Source: Lama glama (Eukaryota). Taken from it: a stretch of DNA of 64,000 bases. Position numbers and translations under genes: made by a program. A model generated the notes under the pieces. The model searched no databases. It was not told the DNA's origin and was given only the letters and a program-made list of their open reading frames with translations. Below, piece by piece: positions 15,466 through 56,005 of this stretch (position 1 is the first letter of the stretch; each line of letters begins with the position of its first letter). Location of the stretch: the NCBI GenBank assembly GCA_028534125.1, contig CM052822.1, forward strand, positions 77,934,001-77,998,000, in the 5' to 3' direction.

Positions 15466-15965
15466 NNNNNNNNNNNNNNNNNNNNNNNNNNNNNNNNNNN
15501 NNNNNNNNNNNNNNNNNNNNNNNNNNNNNNNNNNNNNNNNNNNNNNNNNNNNNNNNNNNNNNNNNNNNNNNNNNNNNNNNNNNNNNNNNNNNNNNNNNNN
15601 NNNNNNNNNNNNNNNNNNNNNNNNNNNNNNNNNNNNNNNNNNNNNNNNNNNNNNNNNNNNNNNNNNNNNNNNNNNNNNNNNNNNNNNNNNNNNNNNNNNN
15701 NNNNNNNNNNNNNNNNNNNNNNNNNNNNNNNNNNNNNNNNNNNNNNNNNNNNNNNNNNNNNNNNNNNNNNNNNNNNNNNNNNNNNNNNNNNNNNNNNNNN
15801 NNNNNNNNNNNNNNNNNNNNNNNNNNNNNNNNNNNNNNNNNNNNNNNNNNNNNNNNNNNNNNNNNNNNNNNNNNNNNNNNNNNNNNNNNNNNNNNNNNNN
15901 NNNNNNNNNNNNNNNNNNNNNNNNNNNNNNNNNNNNNNNNNNNNNNNNNNNNNNNNNNNNNNNNN
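15466..15965. other. Assembly gap (exactly 500 N)
   Basis: Run of N; the round length suggests a placeholder. Confidence 0.99.
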
Positions 15966-16866: not shown

Positions 16867-17148
<282 letters not shown>

Positions 17149-37500: not shown

Positions 37501-40500
37501 CCGCCCTTGCTGCCCCTGCCTGCGGCGTGCCTGCAGGGCCAGGGCGAGGCCAGGGCCGCTGCCGGGCTCTAGCCGGCTGGTGCTGCTTTTTGTTTTTTTA
37601 GATATTCAGTGCTTTATAAAATCAGCTGTGTTAGACAACGGCCCGGCTGTGGGCTGATGGAAGTGTCCCGGCACGTGCGAGGTGGGCTGAGCTGCGACGC
37701 CCGCAGGTCAGGCAGTGAAGTGCGCTGAACTGACGTCAAGTCCGCGTGTGGGGCTGCCTCAGGGCGTCTCCGTCCTGCACGTATGTATGTGCAGGTACTC
37801 GCATTCACGCTCTGCTCCGTTGTGGCTGCTGCCAGGAGTTGAGCGCGCAGCTCCCCGTGCTGGCCAGCGGTGCCGCGCTGTGCAGCGTGTGCACCCGTGC
37901 CCCCACCCCCGGAACCACGGGTTAGCGTCCCTCCTCCCTTCTCTTCGTTTCTGATTGAGGTACAGTCAGTTTACAGTGTTGCGTCCAGGGATGGATGCAT
38001 TTTTGGATGTTTGAATAATCTAAAAATGTCAGGGTGGTATTCATGATTTGATTAAGTATGAGATTAACCGCCCCCACCAACCAAAAAAAAGCCCGAAACC
38101 AGCCATAAGCAAGGCCTCTTGGGTTGTACATATTTGGGTAAAGTGATTGTGCCTTTATATGTGGAAGTTTGTTTTTATTTGCATGTTATCAGCCGGATTC
38201 CTGTTCTGCATTCGAACTCCATTTGGGGAGAGAACTGAAGTGTTTGGTGTGGTGGCTGTGCACATGTGACAGCGGCCGGAACATTCCTTTCATAGTTGCT
38301 CCATGATTTCAGTGTGCTCTGGCGGGGATCCTGGCAGATCTCGGCTTTGTTTTTAAATTTCATTGAACTTGGTCCTAGAGGGCAGGGTGTCCTGGTGTGT
38401 TCAGCTTCCGAAATGAGAAGGGGGTCTGATCCGTTGTAAGCAGGGTAAACTTTAGTTAATTCGAATGCTTTAATCGTTAATTTGTGCACAGGAAAAGGCT
38501 AGTGGAAACTATACCAAAACAGTCAGTTCCGTTTGGGTTGTAGAATTAAGATGTGGCTCATCTGTGCTTCTCTAAGTAACGCGTCTGGCCTTTATGTAGC
38601 GCAGATTGCCGAACTCACAGTGTCTACAAACAGTTAGTGGTAAGCTTCCACCGAAGAGGAGTGTGTTAGCGACTGACAGCAGCGTGGGGAGTTTGGAAGA
38701 GTCTGTGGAGAGAAGCCGGGACTGTGGGTGGGGCTGAGACAGGAGTGGCAACCCTCGCTTTCTGGGTCCACCCCGAGGCACCATGTGGGTCCATGAGGAT
38801 GGGTGTCAGCGTAGTGTCGCTGGGTCTTAGTTGGTGGGGGTCTTCTGGAGCCGTGTGCAGGGCTGGGGCGCTCCCCGTGGTGGCCCAGGGTGGGGCGTGG
38901 CCCGCAGGGAGCCTTCTCTCCTCGTGAGGGGGCGGCAGCGTGTCCTTCCAGGTGCCGACTGCGGGCTCACCTTCTCTGACTCGAAGATGCTTCAGAGTGT
39001 TTTTGCCAGATGATGTTAACTTACAGCACGGGCGTTCTGAGTTCTCGTTTAGCCCGTGGTTGGGACGACCACGTGGGGGGACCAAGAAAGGAAGGAGACC
39101 GACCCCAGGTCTTTAGTCACGAAAGTGGGCCGGGCTCATCCTGACAGTAACAAGTAAGTGCTGTGGGGCTGAGACGTTTAAGGAAAAGTTGCTTTTGGCT
39201 GAGTGCCTCTTCTGGGGAGGGCACGGCTCTGTGTAGTTGCAGAGCGATGGTGTCTTCCGGTCAAGAGCACCTGGCCAGGGAGAGCCTCGGGGCTTTACTT
39301 CCTGGTGGTGCTCCCGCCACCAGCGGAGAGCTTCCCCTCTGCTTTGGGAAGCACAGTCTTAGACGAGAATTCTGTGATCGGGCTCAGGGCAGCCGTGTTT
39401 TCCTGCACAGCTGGGCTCACAGCCCGACTCACGGAGCTGGGCAGGTGGTGTGTGCCCCCCCTGCCATCTGACTTCCGGACCCTGGCTGCTCAGCGGGGCT
39501 CCCATCGCCCGCTCACCGTCTGCTGCGCCCTCAGGCCAGTGCGTCCCTGCCGTCTAGGTCAGTTCAGTTCTGCCGCCGAGGACGCCCTGCTGGAGGCCAG
39601 GGAGGACGGGGATCCCGGAGCAGAAGACCAGCTCAGGGGCTCCCCACCTGCACTCGCAGTCGGGGGACGGCATTCTCTGCCAGTGCCCATTCGGGGAGCA
39701 GCCAGGTGCCTCTGTGTCCAGTGTCACGTGGCCTTCTGACATTTGGGGTACAGGGGAGGCTGTGAGGATGAGGTCTGGAGGCACTGCGACAGGAAAGCCC
39801 CAAAACAGATGATGCGCTGCAGCGGAGTTCAGGCTGGAGCGGCCGTTCCCATGCGTTCTTGGGTCGCGCCCCCCAGACCCCCCTGCCTTGGAGAGGCCCC
39901 GCTCTGCGCACCGCTCTCGCTCGTCTCCAGGGTGCCTGGTACTTCTGGTCCAGGACCTGGCTGATGGGTGGCCACTCTGGGGTCCCACGGCCCCCAGGGA
40001 TGTGGTGTCCGCAGTGCCAAGCTCGGATGTCCGGCAGCCTTGTCTGCCCCGAAGGCAGGACCGCCTCTGCTCTGGGCAGGACCTGTCCTGAGGAGGCCCG
40101 AGGGGCGTCTCGGGGCAGTGGTTCAGGACCCGGGCTGGGGTCCTCTCCAAACCCCGGCCGGTCTGTGTCCAGGAGGAGTTAGGTCAGTGCTCCTGGGGCG
40201 TAGCCCGTTTGCACATGGTGGAGAGCAGGTCGGGGCTGCTGTTCTGAGGGGCCAGCTGGCCCTGGGGTCACTGGGACAGGACAGCCCTTCCCGGCCCGGG
40301 ACTGCCCTCCTTCCCCTGCGCGTGTCTGCTGACCCACTCCCCATTTTCTTCTCGTTTGTCCTGCTCAGAAGCTGTGGGTGGCACCAGTCCAGTTCGTTCA
40401 CGCTTTGTCCACAGTGCGGGTCACAGCGCTGGAGGCCACGGGCCCCACTGGCCGCCTGGTCAGAGCCAGGCCACTTGAGTTTGTCTGGGAGGAGGATCCC

Positions 40501-43500
40501 ACCACTGGCTTTGACAAAAGCTGTCGCCCCAGTCAGCTCCCCTCCCGTGGGTGTGTGCCACGCACCGCTGTGTCCCTTCTGAGGATGGGGCGTCCTTTTG
40601 TGAATCTGTCAGCACCTGGTGGAATCCTGGGTTTAGTACAGTGGGTTCAGAATGAGTGCTGGAACAAGCGCACGTCGAGGGCTTCCTTCCAGAAGGTCCC
40701 CAGCAGAGATGCTCGGGTAAGGTTCTTAGTCACCACCTTTCTCTCTTTTCTTCAAACCCTTTCCCTGGTACTTGAGGCGCAGCCGGGCGTCATGGAGACT
40801 TTGTGGGGTCCAGACCCAGGACCTCTGGAGCTCGGGACGTTGTCTGGGGGCCTCCAGGGCTGACCACATGGGGCAGTCGGCATCCCGGCTGGGTGTCCCC
40901 AGACGGGGCTTTTCTGGGAGGCCAAGCCCGAGACCTGGCCATCACCTGCTGCCCCTCCCTCTGCCCCTGGGTGACCCCTGATGCAGAGAACGTGGGCCGG
41001 CTGAGAGGGGGGCTTGGCAGAGGCGGGGCGTGAAGCGGGTGGTGCTCAGGGCCTGTGTGGGAGAGAGGGGCTTGAGCTGGCTCTGCCCTGGGCAGTGGCG
41101 GGGAGGCACAGCTGCCCTGATGCTCAGGGAGGGGCTCCACACCCAGGAGAGAGCGGCCCGTCATGCCAGGCCGCTGTAGTCCTGCAGTTCCGTGCTCTCT
41201 GGTCAGTGGTCCGACCACCTCTGGACGCGGAGTGTGTCCCAGGGTCCCAGAGTGCCTGACCTTTGGGGAGACGACTGGGACCCTAAGCCTGGGTGGTGAC
41301 TGTTTCCCATGCTCGAGTGCTTGTTCTCTGACAGCCAAGCTCAACACTTGAGTGACTATTTCATCTTCTGAACAGCAGACACAGGGTGTGCAGGCAGCCC
41401 TGAGATCAGGGGCAGGGCCCGGGGCGGGGCGGCTCCGGAAGGAGGAAGCTGGCAGCTGAGCCAGGCGATGGGCCGGTGTGCCTGGGGTGACAGCACGGCC
41501 GGGGGGACCTCCCCGCCCGCACTCTGGCTCCCGGAGACCATCCCGGAGAAGCGCAGGCGAGCGGCGGGACAGACCAGCCTCGCGCTCCGCCATGGGAGGT
41601 GAGTCTCGGCGGAGCCACGGCTGCACATGGGGGATGTGGAGGCGGGTCTCCCTGAACAGCTGACGGGCACCCGTGGGTTTGGGGTGACCTGAGGTGCGGA
41701 CCTCGCTGCAGGTGAGGTGAGTGAAGCCGCTGAAAATGGCCCTCAGGCCCCTGCCTCCTCCAAGTCTAGGGCCATTGTGGTCACCCCCCTTCTCAGATCA
41801 AACGTGCCAGCGTGTCCTGTGCCCCAAAGGTGTCACCCTGAAATCATCTGAACCACCAGGGAGTGGACCACTGCTCGGCCTCAGGCCCCCGGGAGTCTCC
41901 ACAGCCCCTCCCCGTACAGGGTCCAGGTCCTCTTCCATCCAAGGTGGGGAGAAGCTGAGCGTGGGCTGGGGTCATGCTGAGACGCCAGCGCCTCCCTGCT
42001 TTCTGCTTCAAGTGCAGGTTTGATGTCAGGTCTCCACGGCAGTGACCTCCTGGACCCAGCTCCATGGGTCCCACTCCCTTGAAAGGGCTCCATGTATCTG
42101 GGAATCAGACGGGGCCCACGTGTGGGTGTTAGACTTTGCAGCCCTGAGTGCCCCTGCCCCAGGAGCCGCCCTACACACCGCCCTCCTGCAGGCAAACAGG
42201 CGTGTTCATTCCAAAGCCTGTGGCCCCTTCCTCAGCAGTCACACTGGGGGCGAGGCTGGGCCCACGGAGCACACGCCCAGGTGGAGGGCTTGCTTGAGGC
42301 TGGAGTGACAGCCGGGCCCGGGGCCTGTTTCTTCAGCCTGGCCTTTGACTTTGAGGACCCGCAGTGGGGGCGGCCAGTGGTCCTCAGGAGGGCTACTGAG
42401 GACAGGGCATCTGACGTGGTGGCTGCCAAGGCCCTGGGCATGGAGCGCCAGGCCTCCCTCCCAGCCTTAGGGCCTCCGTGGGTCCACAGATAACGCGTCT
42501 CCCTTCTATTTGAGGGTTGGGGTTGTGACTGGTCTGTGGCCTGGAGGCCAGCTCTCCGCCAGCCCCAGAATGCTGTTCCCTGATGGGGGCACTTGGGTTG
42601 TATAAGGCGTGGCCCGTCCCGGAGCAGAAACTGAGTCTGCATCGCAGGCCCCACCCAGGTTATGGGCTCCCCGGGGTCTCAGGCGCGAACTGCTCTGTGG
42701 TGTGGGTGGTGGGACTCGGACAGCGCACCCGGCGGAGGGGGGACGCCGGGGCCCGAGCAGGTGTGGTGTGCAGGTGGGCCGTGCGTGCGGGTGTGTGGTG
42801 AGGTGGAGGGGCGGCCCCGCACCTCTTCCCCGCGCCCAGCCTGGCACTCGGGGCCGACGTGTGCAGCACAGGCAGCTGTGAGTGTAGGAGCCCCGTGAGT
42901 GCAGGTCTCTCGTAACAAACGCCTCATTTCAGGAGCACCTCCCCGACCAGGTCTGCCTAGTGGTCGGGGGAGGCAGGAGTGGAGGGGCCCCTGCACAGGG
43001 GGCAGAGGAAGAGCTCACGCAGGCGTCCAGCCTCGGTTCACACTCCACGAGGAGGTGACCCTTCCGGCTCATTTGCTTGGGCTCAGGCTTCGAGGCTCTG
43101 GCTGCCGTGGTGTTTGGGACCCCCCGCCCCCTGCACACATGGAGCCGAGTGTCCAGGGGCCCAGGAAGGGTGCCGCTGCGCCCACCCAGCAGACGGGTGG
43201 GCTTGCCATCTCGTTACTGGACTTCCAGCAGCGCCTTTCTCACGTTCCGCCACGTGACTGGCCATCAAAACGTCTCAAGAGAAAGGCGCTGACCCTCTCG
43301 GTGAACGTTACCGCTGTGTTGGAGTCCATCCCCAGCATCCCGCCTAACCTGCAGAACTCCTGGTTTCAAAAGCCCAGCAGAAGCACGGGCCTGCGAGCGG
43401 TGAGGTGGTCCTTGGCGGTGTTTCTGGTGTGGCAGGCGCCTGGTGCGGGCGGGCCGCAGGGCCCACGGCCGCTGCCCCCACCCCAGGCTCGTTTCAGCAC

Positions 43501-43853
43501 CGCGTGCGGGTCCCGGAGCCAAAGCTGCCTACGGGGGAGGCCAACAGTCCGGAGCCCTTCCTGCCGGGGGCTCCTGGGCTGACTCTGACGATGCGACTGT
43601 GGCGGTTGGTCCAGCCTGACCGTGGTTCCGAGAGGACACCCTCTCTCTCTCAGACCCACTAACGTGTGCTGAGGGTTGGTGGGGAGCGGCTGCTCCCCGG
43701 AAGGCGAGTCCAGGCCCCAGCAGAGCGGTGGGGGGAGTGAGGCGATGCCCTCCTTTGCTGCTGCGGGGCCATGGTGGCGGTGGGGGTGGTGGCCCCATCT
43801 GTGTCCAGGTCGGGTAGGAGAACCTGACGTGCGTCTCTGTCCTGTGCTTTCAG

Positions 43854-44069
43854 GTGTGGCCGACGAGGACGCCTTCGAGGAGGAGTGTCGGCGACGAGGC
43901 CAGAGCGCGCTGCCCTTCCAGCCCGCCAGCACCAGCGCTCGCTCACTGAGGTCATACCGGCCCGCCTCTCTGCCCAAACACGCATCCCACTACGTTGGTG
44001 ATGACGAGGACGAGCCAGGCCGCCCCTGGGCCACCGGCAGCTGGGAGCCCCCCTCTGTGTTCTCGGCAG
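43854..44069 (+). CDS. DNAJB6: DNAJB6 exon 9 (long isoform a)
   Basis: gctttcag|GTGTGGCC...TCGGCAG|gtgtgc; 216 nt, phase 1/1; GVADEDAFEEECRRRGQSALPFQPA...WEPPSVFSA resembles recalled human [25 protein letters not shown]. Confidence 0.92.
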
Positions 44070-44239
44070 GTGTGCACCGGGAGCCGCCCATCCCCGCCAC
44101 CTCGGCCCCCACCACCTCGGCCCCAGCTCCGGCCCCAGCTCCGGCCCCGGCCCCAGCCCCAGCCCCGGCCCCAACCCCAACCCCAGCCCCGGCCCCGAGA
44201 GGACAGAAGTCGCTCCTGTGCTGCTGCGTCCTGACCTGA
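44070..44239 (+). CDS. DNAJB6: Candidate alternative C-terminus by exon 9 read-through: Ala-Pro linker plus CCCVLT CaaX
   Basis: Open in frame from exon 9 to TGA at 44237-44239; ATTAAA at 44282-44287; no transcript evidence available. Confidence 0.55.
44096..44197 (+). repeat. Degenerate (GCCCCR)n hexamer tandem repeat
   Basis: About 13 GCYCCR/ACCCCA units preceded by two acctcggcccc units. Confidence 0.9.
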
Positions 44240-47200
44240 GGGCTGCGGCAGGGGGAGGCGCCTCCCCTCCCCAGACCCCCCATTAAAGCGGGTGCAGTCT
44301 CTCTTGGTGGGTGGAAGATGGCAGGTGCTGTGTTCACATGCGACGCTCCTTTCTGTAACTTTCGGCTCACTACTGGGGATCTTTTCTTGTAGACTGGGGG
44401 CCCCACCACCGCCTTTGTGGCTGCTCCCCGCCTTTGTGTTGAGTTGAAAGCTCGGCCTCACACCCGCCGAGGGGGCCTGCCGTCCACTGGACGGGTGCTG
44501 ACCACGCTTTCACCAGGGGAGGCCCCCCGCTGGGTGCCCTGGGCGCTCACCGCTCCCCCGGTGCCCTGGGCGCTCGCTGCCCTGGGTCTCCGGGGCCCCA
44601 GCTCTGCCCCCTTCCTGCGTCTTGGCGCACAGTTTCTTAGAGAGCCCAGGTGGGTCTTCTAAGCGAATTCCCCATAGGAGTTTCTGGATTATCTCTGCCG
44701 GCGTGGTGGTGTGGCTGTGCACGTAGGCTTGACCCTGGCTGAGTTGAAAGGCCGCAGTGATTTAGTGTGAATTATCCGTCAGTTTGAAGCGTCTGTGTCC
44801 TGGTTCTCAGCGCTGGGAGTGGCCAGGGTGACCACGGCAGGTTGTGAGGTGTGCGTCCGTCCTTGGTCCCGCGTCAGGCCGGCGTCTCGGTGCGTGCTGG
44901 AGGCCGGTTCTGTGGGCCTGGGATGGGCGGTGCCTCTGGGCAAGGACCTCCCGGGATGAAGCCTGTCCCTCCTCCAGAACTTCCTGTGGGAGCTCCGTTG
45001 CACGAAGCCCCTTCCAGCCCTTCTCAGGTGCAGCAGAGGTGTGTGTCGGGCTCTGAGCAGGACCAAAGGAAGTGTGCCCTGCGTCCCCCTGAAGGCGCAC
45101 ATCCTGGGCTTCCAGCCGGGGCGCGGAGCCCCGCGGAAGGGTGCAGACCTGGCCACCGGCTGCCGGGGAGCCAGCCGGCAAAGGCAGATGGGCAGAAACG
45201 GCCTTTTCCTGTGTGATTAAATGAAGAGTAGAGGTGATTGGAAGGGCTGTGTGAGTTCAGCGGAAACTTGTTCTGCCTTGAATAGGTGTGCGGACGCTCC
45301 CCCGGCTTTGTGGTCAGCTCCCGGGGCTGGCCGCTCTGGGGGTGGCCTTGGTGAGGGCAGGGCTGTGCCTCAGTCTCCCCAAACAGGTGACCTTCCAGCA
45401 GTGACGTAACGGCTGCGTCCCTCCGGTTGGAAGGACGCTAGGTGGGAAGTCCCAGTCGCAGGAGCAGGGTCCGCCGGCCCCTGGAGCAGGACGAGGGAGT
45501 GGGGCTCGGGCTGGGCTGCCAGCTGAAGGCCCTGTTGCCATGGGTCCCGGGGTGGCGGCGCTGCCGGGGGACCCCGGGAGCAGGGGTTTGCAGGAAGAGC
45601 AGAAGGTGCTGCCGCTTTCTGAAATCGCGGGGTTTTGTCAGTTTTACCCCCAGGGCCCTACCAGGTTTTGTTTCTGAGTGGGGAGGCCCAGCTGACTTAG
45701 GAGCCGCTCGAATCCTCACACGGGCGAGGGACGGACTTGGCTCCTGCTGAACCCCTGCCTGTGGCGGGTGGTGGCGGAGCGCAGCCGGCGGGCTCTGAGG
45801 GCTGCCGAGTCAACCTCGTTTCTTGTTTCCTTTGAAATCAAGTCATGAGGCCTTCAAAGGAGTGTCTGGGTGAAGTCACCAAAGAGTTAAAGACGTGGGT
45901 TTTGCCTAAACATGGCGCATTGTGAGAAAGCACCGCCTGGTTCTGCTGGACGGTGGGCCGCGTGCCTGGCTCCCGCAGCCTGACAGCCTCTGCTCCGGGT
46001 GGTGGAGCCGTGGCCGCTGCACGGCGGTCCTGTCGGTTTGCAGGAAGGAAGCTGCGGTTTTGCTTGCTTGCTTCTCTTCCCAGAAGCACCTGTGATTTCT
46101 TTGGGCTGGAATCTCGGCTGCGTTTGTCTGGGAGGTTAGCGACGTGGCCCGGCCGCCCTGGTGGTGGCGCAGCAGCAGGTCTGTCCGGGTTTGCACTGAC
46201 TCCCCCTGAGATTTGTGTGACGCGTGTGGCCGGGGGCCCGCCATGTCCCCAGACACTCCGTTCCCCCCCGACTTGAGGCCTCGGGTACCAGTGCAGGTCG
46301 TGCGCAGGGCTCACGCGCGTCACCCTGGGGTAGTTTCCACCACACGCTGACCTTCCAGAAGGTGGAGGTTTCCTGCTGACAGCCGGCTCTCAGGATAAGC
46401 GGCACTGCTCTTCGTAGCTCAGATCCGAGGACTGTCCTTGGTGACGGGAGGCACTGCCACCTGGAGGCTGCTCCCTGGACCGCAGCGGTCCCTGAAGCGG
46501 GGAGGGGCAGAGGAGAGGTGGTTTCCACACTGGTGCCTGCCTTCGGGTCTGTAGCCGGGCCGGTCGGTGTCCCCCGGGCGCCCCAGACGCACAGGACTGG
46601 CACCTGCCCGGTGGGACGTACCCTGGAATCCTGTCATTTATGCTGAATTCCTTTAGTTTGTCCGCGGTTATTTTTCTGTGTCTTAAAATTGAAGGTGTCT
46701 TGTTGCAGATGTGGCGTTTAAATAAGAAATTTGAGTGAGGAATTGACTCCCACCGCCTTGTGCTGTGACAGCAGGCGGTCTCCCCGGAGGCGCCGTGGCT
46801 GGGAGGACGGCTGAGCCCCAGCTCTGCCCTCTGCGTCCCCAGAGCTTCCAGGTCCCTTCTGGGTCAGGTGGTAGGATTTCATGACCAGAGACAGGTGTGG
46901 GGCCCAGGTGGGAGGAGGGAGCACGTCACCGGGCCTGCCAGTGCCTCCGTGGGGCCTGGCCTGGCCCAGGGGCAGCCCAGTCGCAGGGACAGGGACCTCG
47001 GGAGTCTGTGGATGCTGGTACGTTGGCAGGTGCTGCCCTCCTTCTTGTTGGCTTGTTGTGCATGTAGCTGAGCCCGGTGGGGGAAGAGAGGCCATCGTCC
47101 TCTCCCTCTCGTGAGCCAGACCCTTTGTCGGGGCCACTTCCCTAAGCCCATGGCCTTGACGGCTCCTGATGGGCGGATGGCCTCCGAGCTGCGAGGGAGG

Positions 47201-48029
47201 TGGGCAGGACACGCAGGCCTCACGGAGCCCTCGGGACACGTCAGCCGGGGCCGCGGCAAGCACGTGTGTGTGAGGTTTGAGTCGGTGGGAAGGCTGGCGG
47301 GCGGGGGCACCTGCAGCCCTGCGGTATCCAAGGCACGTGCGTCTCCCTTGACCCCATGGGTCACAGGCGTCGCGGGCCGTTATGGATTGGCTGGAGGCGC
47401 CCACCTGACCGCCACCAGGCCCAGCCCGCCGGGGACTGCCGTTCTGTGAGGACCGGAGGCCCCGGCATGGATGCGTGAGGGTCCTGCCCTCCGTGTGTGT
47501 CTGCTCCAGAGGGGCGCCATCAAGTTTAAAATCCTGGCAGTGCCTTCAGGCAATCTTTCCAGCAGGCTTGGGGCCCGTGTGTGTTAAGTGCAGTGGTCCA
47601 GGCCGGGTCCAGGCAGGCCACCCCGTGGATCTTTTGTGACCCAAGGTCAGCATTGCGCTTCCCTGCGTCCCAGCCCTCGTGTGGATGGCTGGCTCCGGGA
47701 CAGAACCACTGGAGGGCGAGCGGGTCACGCTGGCTCCTTTGTCCGTGGGCTCCAGGCAGGCACATGACATGGGGGACGAAAGGCCTCAGCCACGTCGAGC
47801 CTGGAGCCCGCGGCCGGGCCGCGGGGGTGGCGGGCAGGGGCGGCTCTGCGGGGCTGTGGCGCTCTTTGGGTTGTGTTGAAGCTCTGCGTGAGTCCCCGTT
47901 TTCCCTGAGCTTGGGTGCGGACCAGGTGGAAGGGGGCGTGACCGGTGTGTCTTCTGACCTGGGGGGTGTTTGCCTCTCGGTGGGGAAGCAGCTGCTCCTG
48001 CCCAGTGTTTCACACGCCTGTTTCCTTAG

Positions 48030-48112
48030 GATTCAGAGAAGGTGGCAAGAGGAAGAAGCAGAAGCAGAAGGAGGAGTCGAAGAAGAAGAAGTCGACCAAA
48101 GGGCACCTCTAG
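48030..48112 (+). CDS. DNAJB6: DNAJB6 exon 10, terminal coding exon of isoform a (basic NLS)
   Basis: tttccttag|GATTCAGA...CTCTAG; 83 nt; GFREGGKRKKQKQKEESKKKKSTKGHL*. Confidence 0.95.
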
Positions 48113-55505: not shown

Positions 55506-56005
55506 NNNNNNNNNNNNNNNNNNNNNNNNNNNNNNNNNNNNNNNNNNNNNNNNNNNNNNNNNNNNNNNNNNNNNNNNNNNNNNNNNNNNNNNNNNNNNNN
55601 NNNNNNNNNNNNNNNNNNNNNNNNNNNNNNNNNNNNNNNNNNNNNNNNNNNNNNNNNNNNNNNNNNNNNNNNNNNNNNNNNNNNNNNNNNNNNNNNNNNN
55701 NNNNNNNNNNNNNNNNNNNNNNNNNNNNNNNNNNNNNNNNNNNNNNNNNNNNNNNNNNNNNNNNNNNNNNNNNNNNNNNNNNNNNNNNNNNNNNNNNNNN
55801 NNNNNNNNNNNNNNNNNNNNNNNNNNNNNNNNNNNNNNNNNNNNNNNNNNNNNNNNNNNNNNNNNNNNNNNNNNNNNNNNNNNNNNNNNNNNNNNNNNNN
55901 NNNNNNNNNNNNNNNNNNNNNNNNNNNNNNNNNNNNNNNNNNNNNNNNNNNNNNNNNNNNNNNNNNNNNNNNNNNNNNNNNNNNNNNNNNNNNNNNNNNN
56001 NNNNN
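55506..56005. other. Assembly gap (exactly 500 N)
   Basis: Run of N. Confidence 0.99.

Follow-up and report, generated by a model that had tools for sequence, protein, structure and literature searches.

The aggregation of polyglutamine and amyloid has a major suppressor in DNAJB6, whose gene underlies limb-girdle muscular dystrophy D1. Does this gene encode a third protein isoform that ends within its last intron? The question arises from a 64,000-nucleotide (nt) stretch of the Lama glama genome (contig CM052822.1 of assembly GCA_028534125.1, positions 77,934,001 to 77,998,000; hereafter the window), which contains a DNAJB6 gene of mammalian type on the plus strand (tblastn, Pfam) and in which the reading frame of exon 9 stays open beyond the exon's splice donor. 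Our analysis indicates that the segment behind this donor is probably the terminal coding part of a third, evolutionarily old DNAJB6 isoform, which ends in a likely lipid-anchor signal of the kind known as a CaaX box (cysteine, two aliphatic residues, a final residue X, stop). The main support comes from conservation across 25 sequences, codon changes that are silent only, transcripts, the placement of a polyadenylation (polyA) hexamer and the precedent of the paralogue DNAJB2.

We first describe the tail as it stands in the window. If the exon 9 donor is left unused, the frame remains open for 55 codons and reads G-VHREPPIPATSAPTTS(AP)9TPTPAPAPRGQKSLLCCCVLT, with a cysteine at position −4, the aliphatic pair V-L behind it and then, after X, the stop. 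The donor, whose 11-mer is CAGGTGTGCAC, appears moderately weak from its sequence. A preliminary description of this DNA had listed the donor, the 55-codon read-through, the CCCVLT-TGA ending, the ATTAAA hexamer and the GU-rich stretch behind it, and translation and sequence bear out every one of these. It had also pointed out that variation within the Ala-Pro repeat falls mostly at third codon positions. This is so for 8 of the 10 variant bases, but the bias is weak evidence for selection because the repeat units copy each other and the events are not independent. The linker between donor and tail end, typically about 27 residues long, reaches about 48 in the window through the Ala-Pro microsatellite, which makes it 21 residues longer than in other mammals (a 21-residue insertion in the alignment with horse). 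The same repeat is 42 nt (14 codons) shorter in organism A, the close relative from which RNA run X1 derives (about 4% base difference from the window; contigs compared over 43470-46469; repeat read from contig 2). The last 13 residues, RGQKSLLCCCVLT, are the same in the window and in horse, and among the features of the tail only the linker appears to be particular to the window.

An open frame of this length is cheap in such DNA. Between positions 40001 and 52000, where the DNA is 65% GC, 27% of start points give at least 56 open codons. CaaX-like ends close 12 of the 3205 open reading frames (ORFs) in the window, and an end of the form CCC-a-a-X closes 1 of 3205, the CCCVLT tail itself. Because chance frames are so cheap here, the significance of the tail rests on cross-species conservation and not on the window alone. 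The same cheapness would suit an alternative in which the ORF arises as a by-product because a GC-rich last intron is spliced inefficiently, and in which conservation acts on DNA or RNA signals for splicing or polyadenylation that read CCCVLT by chance.

We then compared the tail across 25 sequences: the window, 23 other placentals and one avian contig, spanning Carnivora, Perissodactyla, Chiroptera, Afrotheria, Xenarthra, Rodentia, Lagomorpha and Primates besides the window and the bird. The same read-through frame closes in CCCVL, one of T, A or I, and a stop in 25/25. Of the endings, 22 read LCCCVLT, and GCCCVLT, LCCCVLA and LCCCVLI each occur once; X is accordingly Thr in 23/25, Ala in one and Ile in one. 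The C-V-L core is invariant, as are the three consecutive cysteines, and a cysteine lies exactly at −4 from the stop throughout. The tail measures 34 residues in 17 of the 25 sequences (bird included) and 33–37 residues in all 24 others, against 55 in the window, and across those 24 the indels within it are in-frame only. In a 17-species alignment, mean pairwise identity was 91% in exons 1–8, fell to 55% in exon 9 and 41% in the tail linker, and reached 98% over the last seven residues; all 17 mammals have the Gly-Val encoded across the donor. P0002, a gene call from Logan made on unspliced DNA and matching an American black bear protein at its exon 9 end, likewise crosses the donor and ends ...KSLLCCCVLI. 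It was found by querying with exon 9 plus its extension; later searches admitted full-length proteins as candidates.

The comparison also bears on two earlier suppositions. The preliminary description had allowed that the CaaX end might be lineage-variable, which the 25 sequences contradict, and had given a human read-through ending ...ARGQRGHK without the cysteines. Judged from macaque, whose protein reads ...ARGQRGHKPRLCCCVLT, that ending was probably just truncated. A separate observation concerns a 316-residue protein of Bos mutus grunniens (P0042), which reads exon 9 in another frame (Arg/Pro/Gly-rich) and yet ends ...RRLLCCCVLA, with the ruminant X being Ala. Its sequence suggests that the frame change stems from an indel in the assembly or from patching of the gene model.

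The avian contig extends the comparison beyond mammals. A scan of metagenome contigs with the window protein alone gave no match, and a profile scan gave two contigs, one goat-like and one avian (L001). The goat-like contig stops at the donor and is uninformative on the tail. L001 is avian, with 93% identity to the treeswift DNAJB6 protein; its donor 11-mer is identical to the window's, and its read-through runs for 34 codons to GCCCVLT-TAA. From the first cysteine to the stop, the codons are TGC TGC TGC GTC CTG ACC TGA in the window and TGT TGC TGT GTG TTG ACT TAA in the bird. Over the six CCCVLT codons, 5 of 18 bases differ, 5 of them synonymous and 0 non-synonymous, with the stop in place. 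Such silent-only differences together with a kept stop indicate that the protein, not the DNA, is under selection. These sequences thus indicate that the tail is translated and that purifying selection on it goes back at least to the ancestor of birds and mammals: frame, stop position and amino acids are kept from bird to placentals, and the changes are concentrated at silent sites. This is the outcome of the cross-mammal alignment that the preliminary description had proposed as a check, with the C-C-C-a-a-X-stop conserved. Beside this, an annotated partial DNJB6 of the bird Hemiprocne comata (P0051) reads past the exon 9 donor (...YLSGVHKHVDEK...) and stops at ...KSQGRS, just before the CCCVLT of L001:1677-1782; the annotation is probably truncated.

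These comparisons bear directly on the by-product explanation. Besides the cheap frames, it could draw on RNA run X1, in which intron 9 is evenly covered at about 5% of exon depth, as for unspliced RNA, and on positions 44202-44334, non-coding bases included, for which no difference from organism A is listed. A nucleotide element, however, would not single out exactly the silent sites, and all five base differences between bird and window are synonymous, to which the exchange of TGA for TAA is added. Nor would it keep the frame, the length of 33–37 residues and in-frame-only indels in the 24 other sequences while the linker drifts to 41% identity. We consider it very improbable that the tail is such a by-product.

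We next considered what the tail might do. The read-through isoform keeps the J domain, the glycine/phenylalanine (G/F) and serine/threonine (S/T) regions and exon 9, while the basic nuclear localisation signal of exon 10 is replaced by a Cys-rich tail. The proposal of a third isoform that lacks this signal and has a Cys-rich CaaX end is strongly supported by 24 placentals and the bird. When the exon 9 donor CAG/GTGTGC stays unspliced, translation enters intron 9, passes through the poorly conserved linker and ends at the near-invariant L-C-C-C-V-L-T-stop. In the mechanism that we propose, CVLT, which departs from the CVLS box of H-Ras in a single residue (Ser to Thr), would then act as the CaaX box: the Cys at −4 would be prenylated, most likely farnesylated, -VLT would be removed, the Cys methylated, and the two adjacent cysteines subsequently palmitoylated. 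The lipids would tether the chaperone, on a flexible linker, to the cytosolic face of a membrane. We infer this anchoring from CaaX biology. Alanine at X is a classical farnesyltransferase residue, and threonine may be accepted there too, as in TC10 (CLIT); with Thr or Ala at X, a farnesyl group would be the more likely lipid.

The tail could instead be translated and selected with its Cys cluster in another role: the cysteines might be palmitoylated only, take part in metal or redox chemistry, or form a C-terminal degradation signal by which intron-retaining products are kept low. The Thr found at X in 23/25 sequences is no textbook optimum (Ala and Ile occur once each), the three invariant consecutive cysteines exceed what a CaaX box needs, and the literature searched yielded no lipidation data. 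Set against this, the Cys at −4, the two aliphatic residues and the unmoving stop occur in all sequences and form the register that CaaX enzymes read. Nothing else known needs a Cys in that register, and cysteines upstream of a CaaX box are the usual arrangement for palmitoylation, as in H-Ras and RhoB. On balance a role apart from CaaX processing seems unlikely. Geranylgeranylation of the Rab type (CC or CXC) was considered separately and rejected, since it requires a Rab fold and the Rab escort protein.

A farnesylated and palmitoylated DNAJB6 tail would have counterparts in several known systems. H-Ras-type anchors (...CMSCKCVLS; also RhoB, TC10/RhoQ and paralemmin) place a CaaX box next to further cysteines, CVLS there and CVLT here, and in anchors of the H-Ras type the cysteines adjoining the box are palmitoylated after prenylation, which gives stable membrane binding. 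They differ in being unrelated small GTPases with demonstrated lipidation, whereas DNAJB6 has three contiguous cysteines and Thr at X.

The closest parallel is the paralogue DNAJB2, whose isoform DNAJB2b (HSJ1b) is geranylgeranylated and lies at the endoplasmic reticulum (ER), on the cytosolic face of the membrane (PMC7073051). Both are class B proteins of the same subfamily in which an alternative C-terminus sets the location, one form being cytosolic or nuclear and the other CaaX-ended, and a search of representatives found CaaX endings in DNAJB2 of shark, bichir, piranha and squirrel. DNAJB2 tails, however, end ...RCHIL, CLLS or CSVS and not ...LCCCVLT. DNAJB2b carries ubiquitin-interacting motifs and in mammals a Leu-type X (geranylgeranyl), whereas the DNAJB6 tail has Thr at X (farnesyl more likely) and two adjacent cysteines; lipidation of DNAJB2b has been shown by experiment, while that of the DNAJB6 form is predicted only. 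Homology between the two tails was rejected, as they are not alignable. The likeness is functional only, and the DNAJB6 tail represents a solution reached in parallel rather than a version of the DNAJB2 tail.

Class A J-proteins (DNAJA1/Ydj1, DNAJA2, DNAJA4) are also Hsp70 co-chaperones and depend for their function on a C-terminal CaaX farnesyl (reviewed in PMC10939075). Their CaaX box is constitutive and accompanied by a zinc-finger domain, whereas that of DNAJB6 would be isoform-specific and arise from an unspliced last intron.

Finally, the read-through isoform resembles DNAJB6a, the nuclear long form of 326 residues. The two share exons 1–9 and are close in size in most mammals (about 334 vs 326 residues); on blots they would probably run together, and the same antibodies and exon 9 mutations would probably affect both. 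DNAJB6a is spliced to exon 10 and carries the basic KRKKQKQ...KKKK signal, whereas the read-through form has no such signal and ends in CCCVLT. A related observation comes from DNAJB7 of fruit bats (P0047 and its cluster), which ends ...SAGFKEGGKRKKKKHKK..., an intronless exon 9–exon 10 junction; this ending fits a retrocopy of DNAJB6a mRNA and not of the CaaX form.

We then asked whether the read-through is transcribed. Read-through RNA exists. A guinea-pig-like contig of 1104 nt in the Logan assemblies (P0035) holds the complete coding sequence M...CCCVLT of 333 residues and can, for that reason, only be spliced mRNA; at most 102 nt are left for both untranslated regions together. In run X1, contig 1 (depth 218.6) joins the exon 8 end GGCCAGTTAAAGTCCTTGACGATAAAT (GQLKSLTIN) by splicing onto 43854-44070. 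Contig 2 (depth 11.1) covers 44041-44449, running across the donor and through the shorter Ala-Pro repeat, the stop and ATTAAA; it starts 29 nt inside exon 9, the 29 rather than 31 letters being expected at a graph branch. Contig 3 (depth 10.2) extends from 44420 past 46451 and on for about 1627 nt (to about 48078), roughly to exon 10. The final 380 nt of intron 8 have no X1 contig on them. RNA is thus continuous from exon 9 into intron 9 with the upstream intron spliced out, as in a retained intron, and about 5% of the exon 9-containing RNA in this sample is unspliced at the exon 9 donor. Contig depth is a weak measure here, as it gives a flat mean and comes from a single run on a relative. 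The preliminary description had called for RNA crossing 44069/44070 and ending shortly after ATTAAA; the crossing was found, the end near the hexamer was not.

How the mRNA ends is a separate matter from what it encodes. Intron 9 may be retained, or the transcript may be cleaved at the ATTAAA that lies 43 nt behind the stop, which would make a composite terminal exon, or both may occur; either route gives the same protein. Hexamer and GU-rich stretch both lie shortly after the read-through stop, and the bird contig has AATAAA 20 nt after its own. On the window's plus strand A(A/T)TAAA occurs locally 0.25 times per kb, and in the bird contig the density is about 1.7 per kb, so the joint chance of a hexamer 20–43 nt after the stop in both is about 0.2%. 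Between the window and organism A there is no listed difference over 44202-44334 (at most one unlisted), compared with about 4% elsewhere. The hexamer placement in bird and window, this identity and the short untranslated sequence of P0035 favour a real polyA site.

It is nonetheless a serious possibility, if short of even, that the route is plain retention of intron 9, polyadenylation taking place at the usual distal site behind exon 10 and ATTAAA staying idle. In X1, contigs 2 and 3 show no drop in depth after the hexamer and contig 3 reaches exon 10; since coverage runs on past ATTAAA, what the run documents is a retained intron 9 and not a dedicated 3′ end. Nonsense-mediated decay need not act on such an mRNA, as no exon junction lies downstream of a stop in the last intron when that intron is retained. 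Plain retention leaves aside the hexamer and GU-rich stretch behind the stop in both bird and window, with their low joint chance, and the total of at most 102 untranslated nt on the spliced P0035 contig, which fits a short 3′ untranslated region; contig depth from one relative's run is, moreover, a poor measure on which to set it. The dedicated polyA site of the preliminary description thus has comparative support from the hexamer after the stop in window and bird, and is countered by X1 coverage that continues through the whole intron.

Several observations weigh against a lipid-tailed third isoform. Read-through amounts to only about 5% of exon 9 depth in X1, the depth is no lower after ATTAAA (11.1 vs 10.2 across the intron), and much of this signal could be nuclear unspliced RNA. 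Three further runs labelled as the window's species (X20, X21 and X23, raw reads) placed 0 reads on 43470-46469 and thus provide no test. Thr at X is not among the classical best residues for farnesyltransferase. The tail was not seen in any fish DNAJB6 representative, the long dnajb6b isoforms ending ...APRIGAWF. Since a database protein model requires an open frame, species in which the tail was lost would be under-sampled.

The remaining features of the locus are consistent with a class B J-protein gene, with an HPD-bearing J domain and, behind it, G/F, S/T-rich and C-terminal exons arranged as in DNAJB6; coordinates are collected in the table. The C-terminus and stop of isoform b follow exon 8, and exon 9 is common to isoform a and the read-through isoform. 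An exon for residues 1–22 was not located in the window and may fall within the first of its two 500-base runs of N (15466-15965 and 55506-56005). Pfam reports no domain in exon 9 plus the tail.

Table. Coordinates of DNAJB6 features in the window, in order of position
Feature	Position	Strand	Basis or remark
J-domain exon	~16972-17097	+	Pfam DnaJ E=7.8e-17; HPDKN present
Further DNAJB6 exons	at 16975, 19675, 28666, 30213, 30864, 43854	+	tblastn with horse and clouded leopard DNAJB6
Exon 9, G-VADEDAFEEECRRRGQ...PPSVFSA-G	43854-44069	+	translation; tblastn; relative's RNA contig; phase 1 at both ends
Exon 9 donor CAG/GTGTGC	44067-44075	+	departs from consensus at +4 and +6; 11-mer CAGGTGTGCAC
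Candidate read-through coding extension	44070-44236	+	two last bases of the split Gly codon, then 55 codons (VHREPP...RGQKSLLCCCVLT)
GCCCCA microsatellite, (Ala-Pro)n	44118-44196	+	Tandem Repeats Finder; in-frame linker expansion, lineage-specific
L-C-C-C-V-L-T codons	44216-44236	+	CaaX = CVLT, Cys codon 44225-44227; two upstream Cys 44219-44224
Read-through stop TGA	44237-44239	+	TAA at the equivalent position in the bird
Rest of intron 9	44240-48029	+	whole length covered at depth ~10 in RNA run of relative (retained intron or pre-mRNA)
ATTAAA hexamer	44282-44287	+	43 nt after stop; candidate 3′ end of composite terminal exon
GU/U-rich stretch, candidate downstream element	44297-44334	+	sequence, downstream of hexamer
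Exon 10 coding part, isoform a, G-FREGGKRKKQKQKEESKKKKSTKGHL-stop	48030-48112	+	basic nuclear localisation signal

Other transcript forms and a second repeat were seen at the locus. Isoforms of about 210–214 residues are annotated in pig, panda, horse, dog and fishing cat (P0001, P0004, P0009, P0010, P0014). They join the first G/F exon (...DPFSFDFF; exon end at about 19803 in the window) straight to exon 9 (43854) and exon 10, and skip the remaining G/F, the S/T-rich region and the C-terminal domain. Other annotated endings after exon 9 read ...SAGRDHKQAENQTEREEE... and ...SAGQDHHAGEKRGWLVIY... (P0027, Mustela nigripes X2; P0228/P0231, Cavia X1/X2), and judging by these gene models the exon 9 donor is also spliced to other, non-conserved terminal exons in some cases. 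Within intron 9, organism A has a 27-nt insertion, GGGTGCCCTGGGCGCTCGCTGCTCCCC, after 44531, inside a direct repeat of GGTGCCCTGGGCGCTC (44500-44590); the two sequences indicate a minisatellite that varies in length.

How much of this was already on record? The preliminary description had called the isoform hidden. NCBI Gnomon and UniProt/TrEMBL list the read-through protein as isoform X1 or X2 of about 332–337 residues, in Hyaena, Suricata, Eumetopias, Neovison, Equus, Saccopteryx, Trichechus, Echinops and Dasypus, and likewise in Marmota, Castor, Ochotona, Macaca, Aotus, Lemur, Microcebus and Cavia; being predicted for so many mammals, it is not hidden. The full-text literature searched yielded no paper describing a third isoform of DNAJB6, or one that is CaaX-ended, prenylated or palmitoylated. 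The ORF is annotated but, in that literature, not studied. The gain lies in the evidence that the tail is under selection and in its functional reading; the ORF itself is already in the databases as a computer prediction.

The literature on DNAJB6 is framed around two proteins. A 2020 review describes the gene with two isoforms and says that it is 'completely unknown' how long DNAJB6 comes to lie at the nuclear envelope and ER (PMC7073051), a 2024 review speaks of 'two key isoforms' (PMC11574355), and a 2021 paper about a recessive frameshift in exon 9 states that exon 9 'uniquely encodes DNAJB6a' (PMC7869515). A third isoform would pass for isoform a by size, by antibody and in exon 9 genetics. 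More speculatively, and we regard this as doubtful in its full extent, a farnesylated and palmitoylated, membrane-tethered DNAJB6 isoform conserved for more than 300 million years might explain the nuclear-envelope and ER pool of 'long' DNAJB6 and part of the exon 9 mutation phenotype now ascribed to DNAJB6a alone, with linker length (34 residues in most amniotes, 55 here) setting the reach of the anti-aggregation domain from the membrane. If the tail is lipidated, the Hsp70 system would gain a membrane-tethered anti-amyloid co-chaperone, in parallel to DNAJB2b, and the question of localisation would become directly testable.

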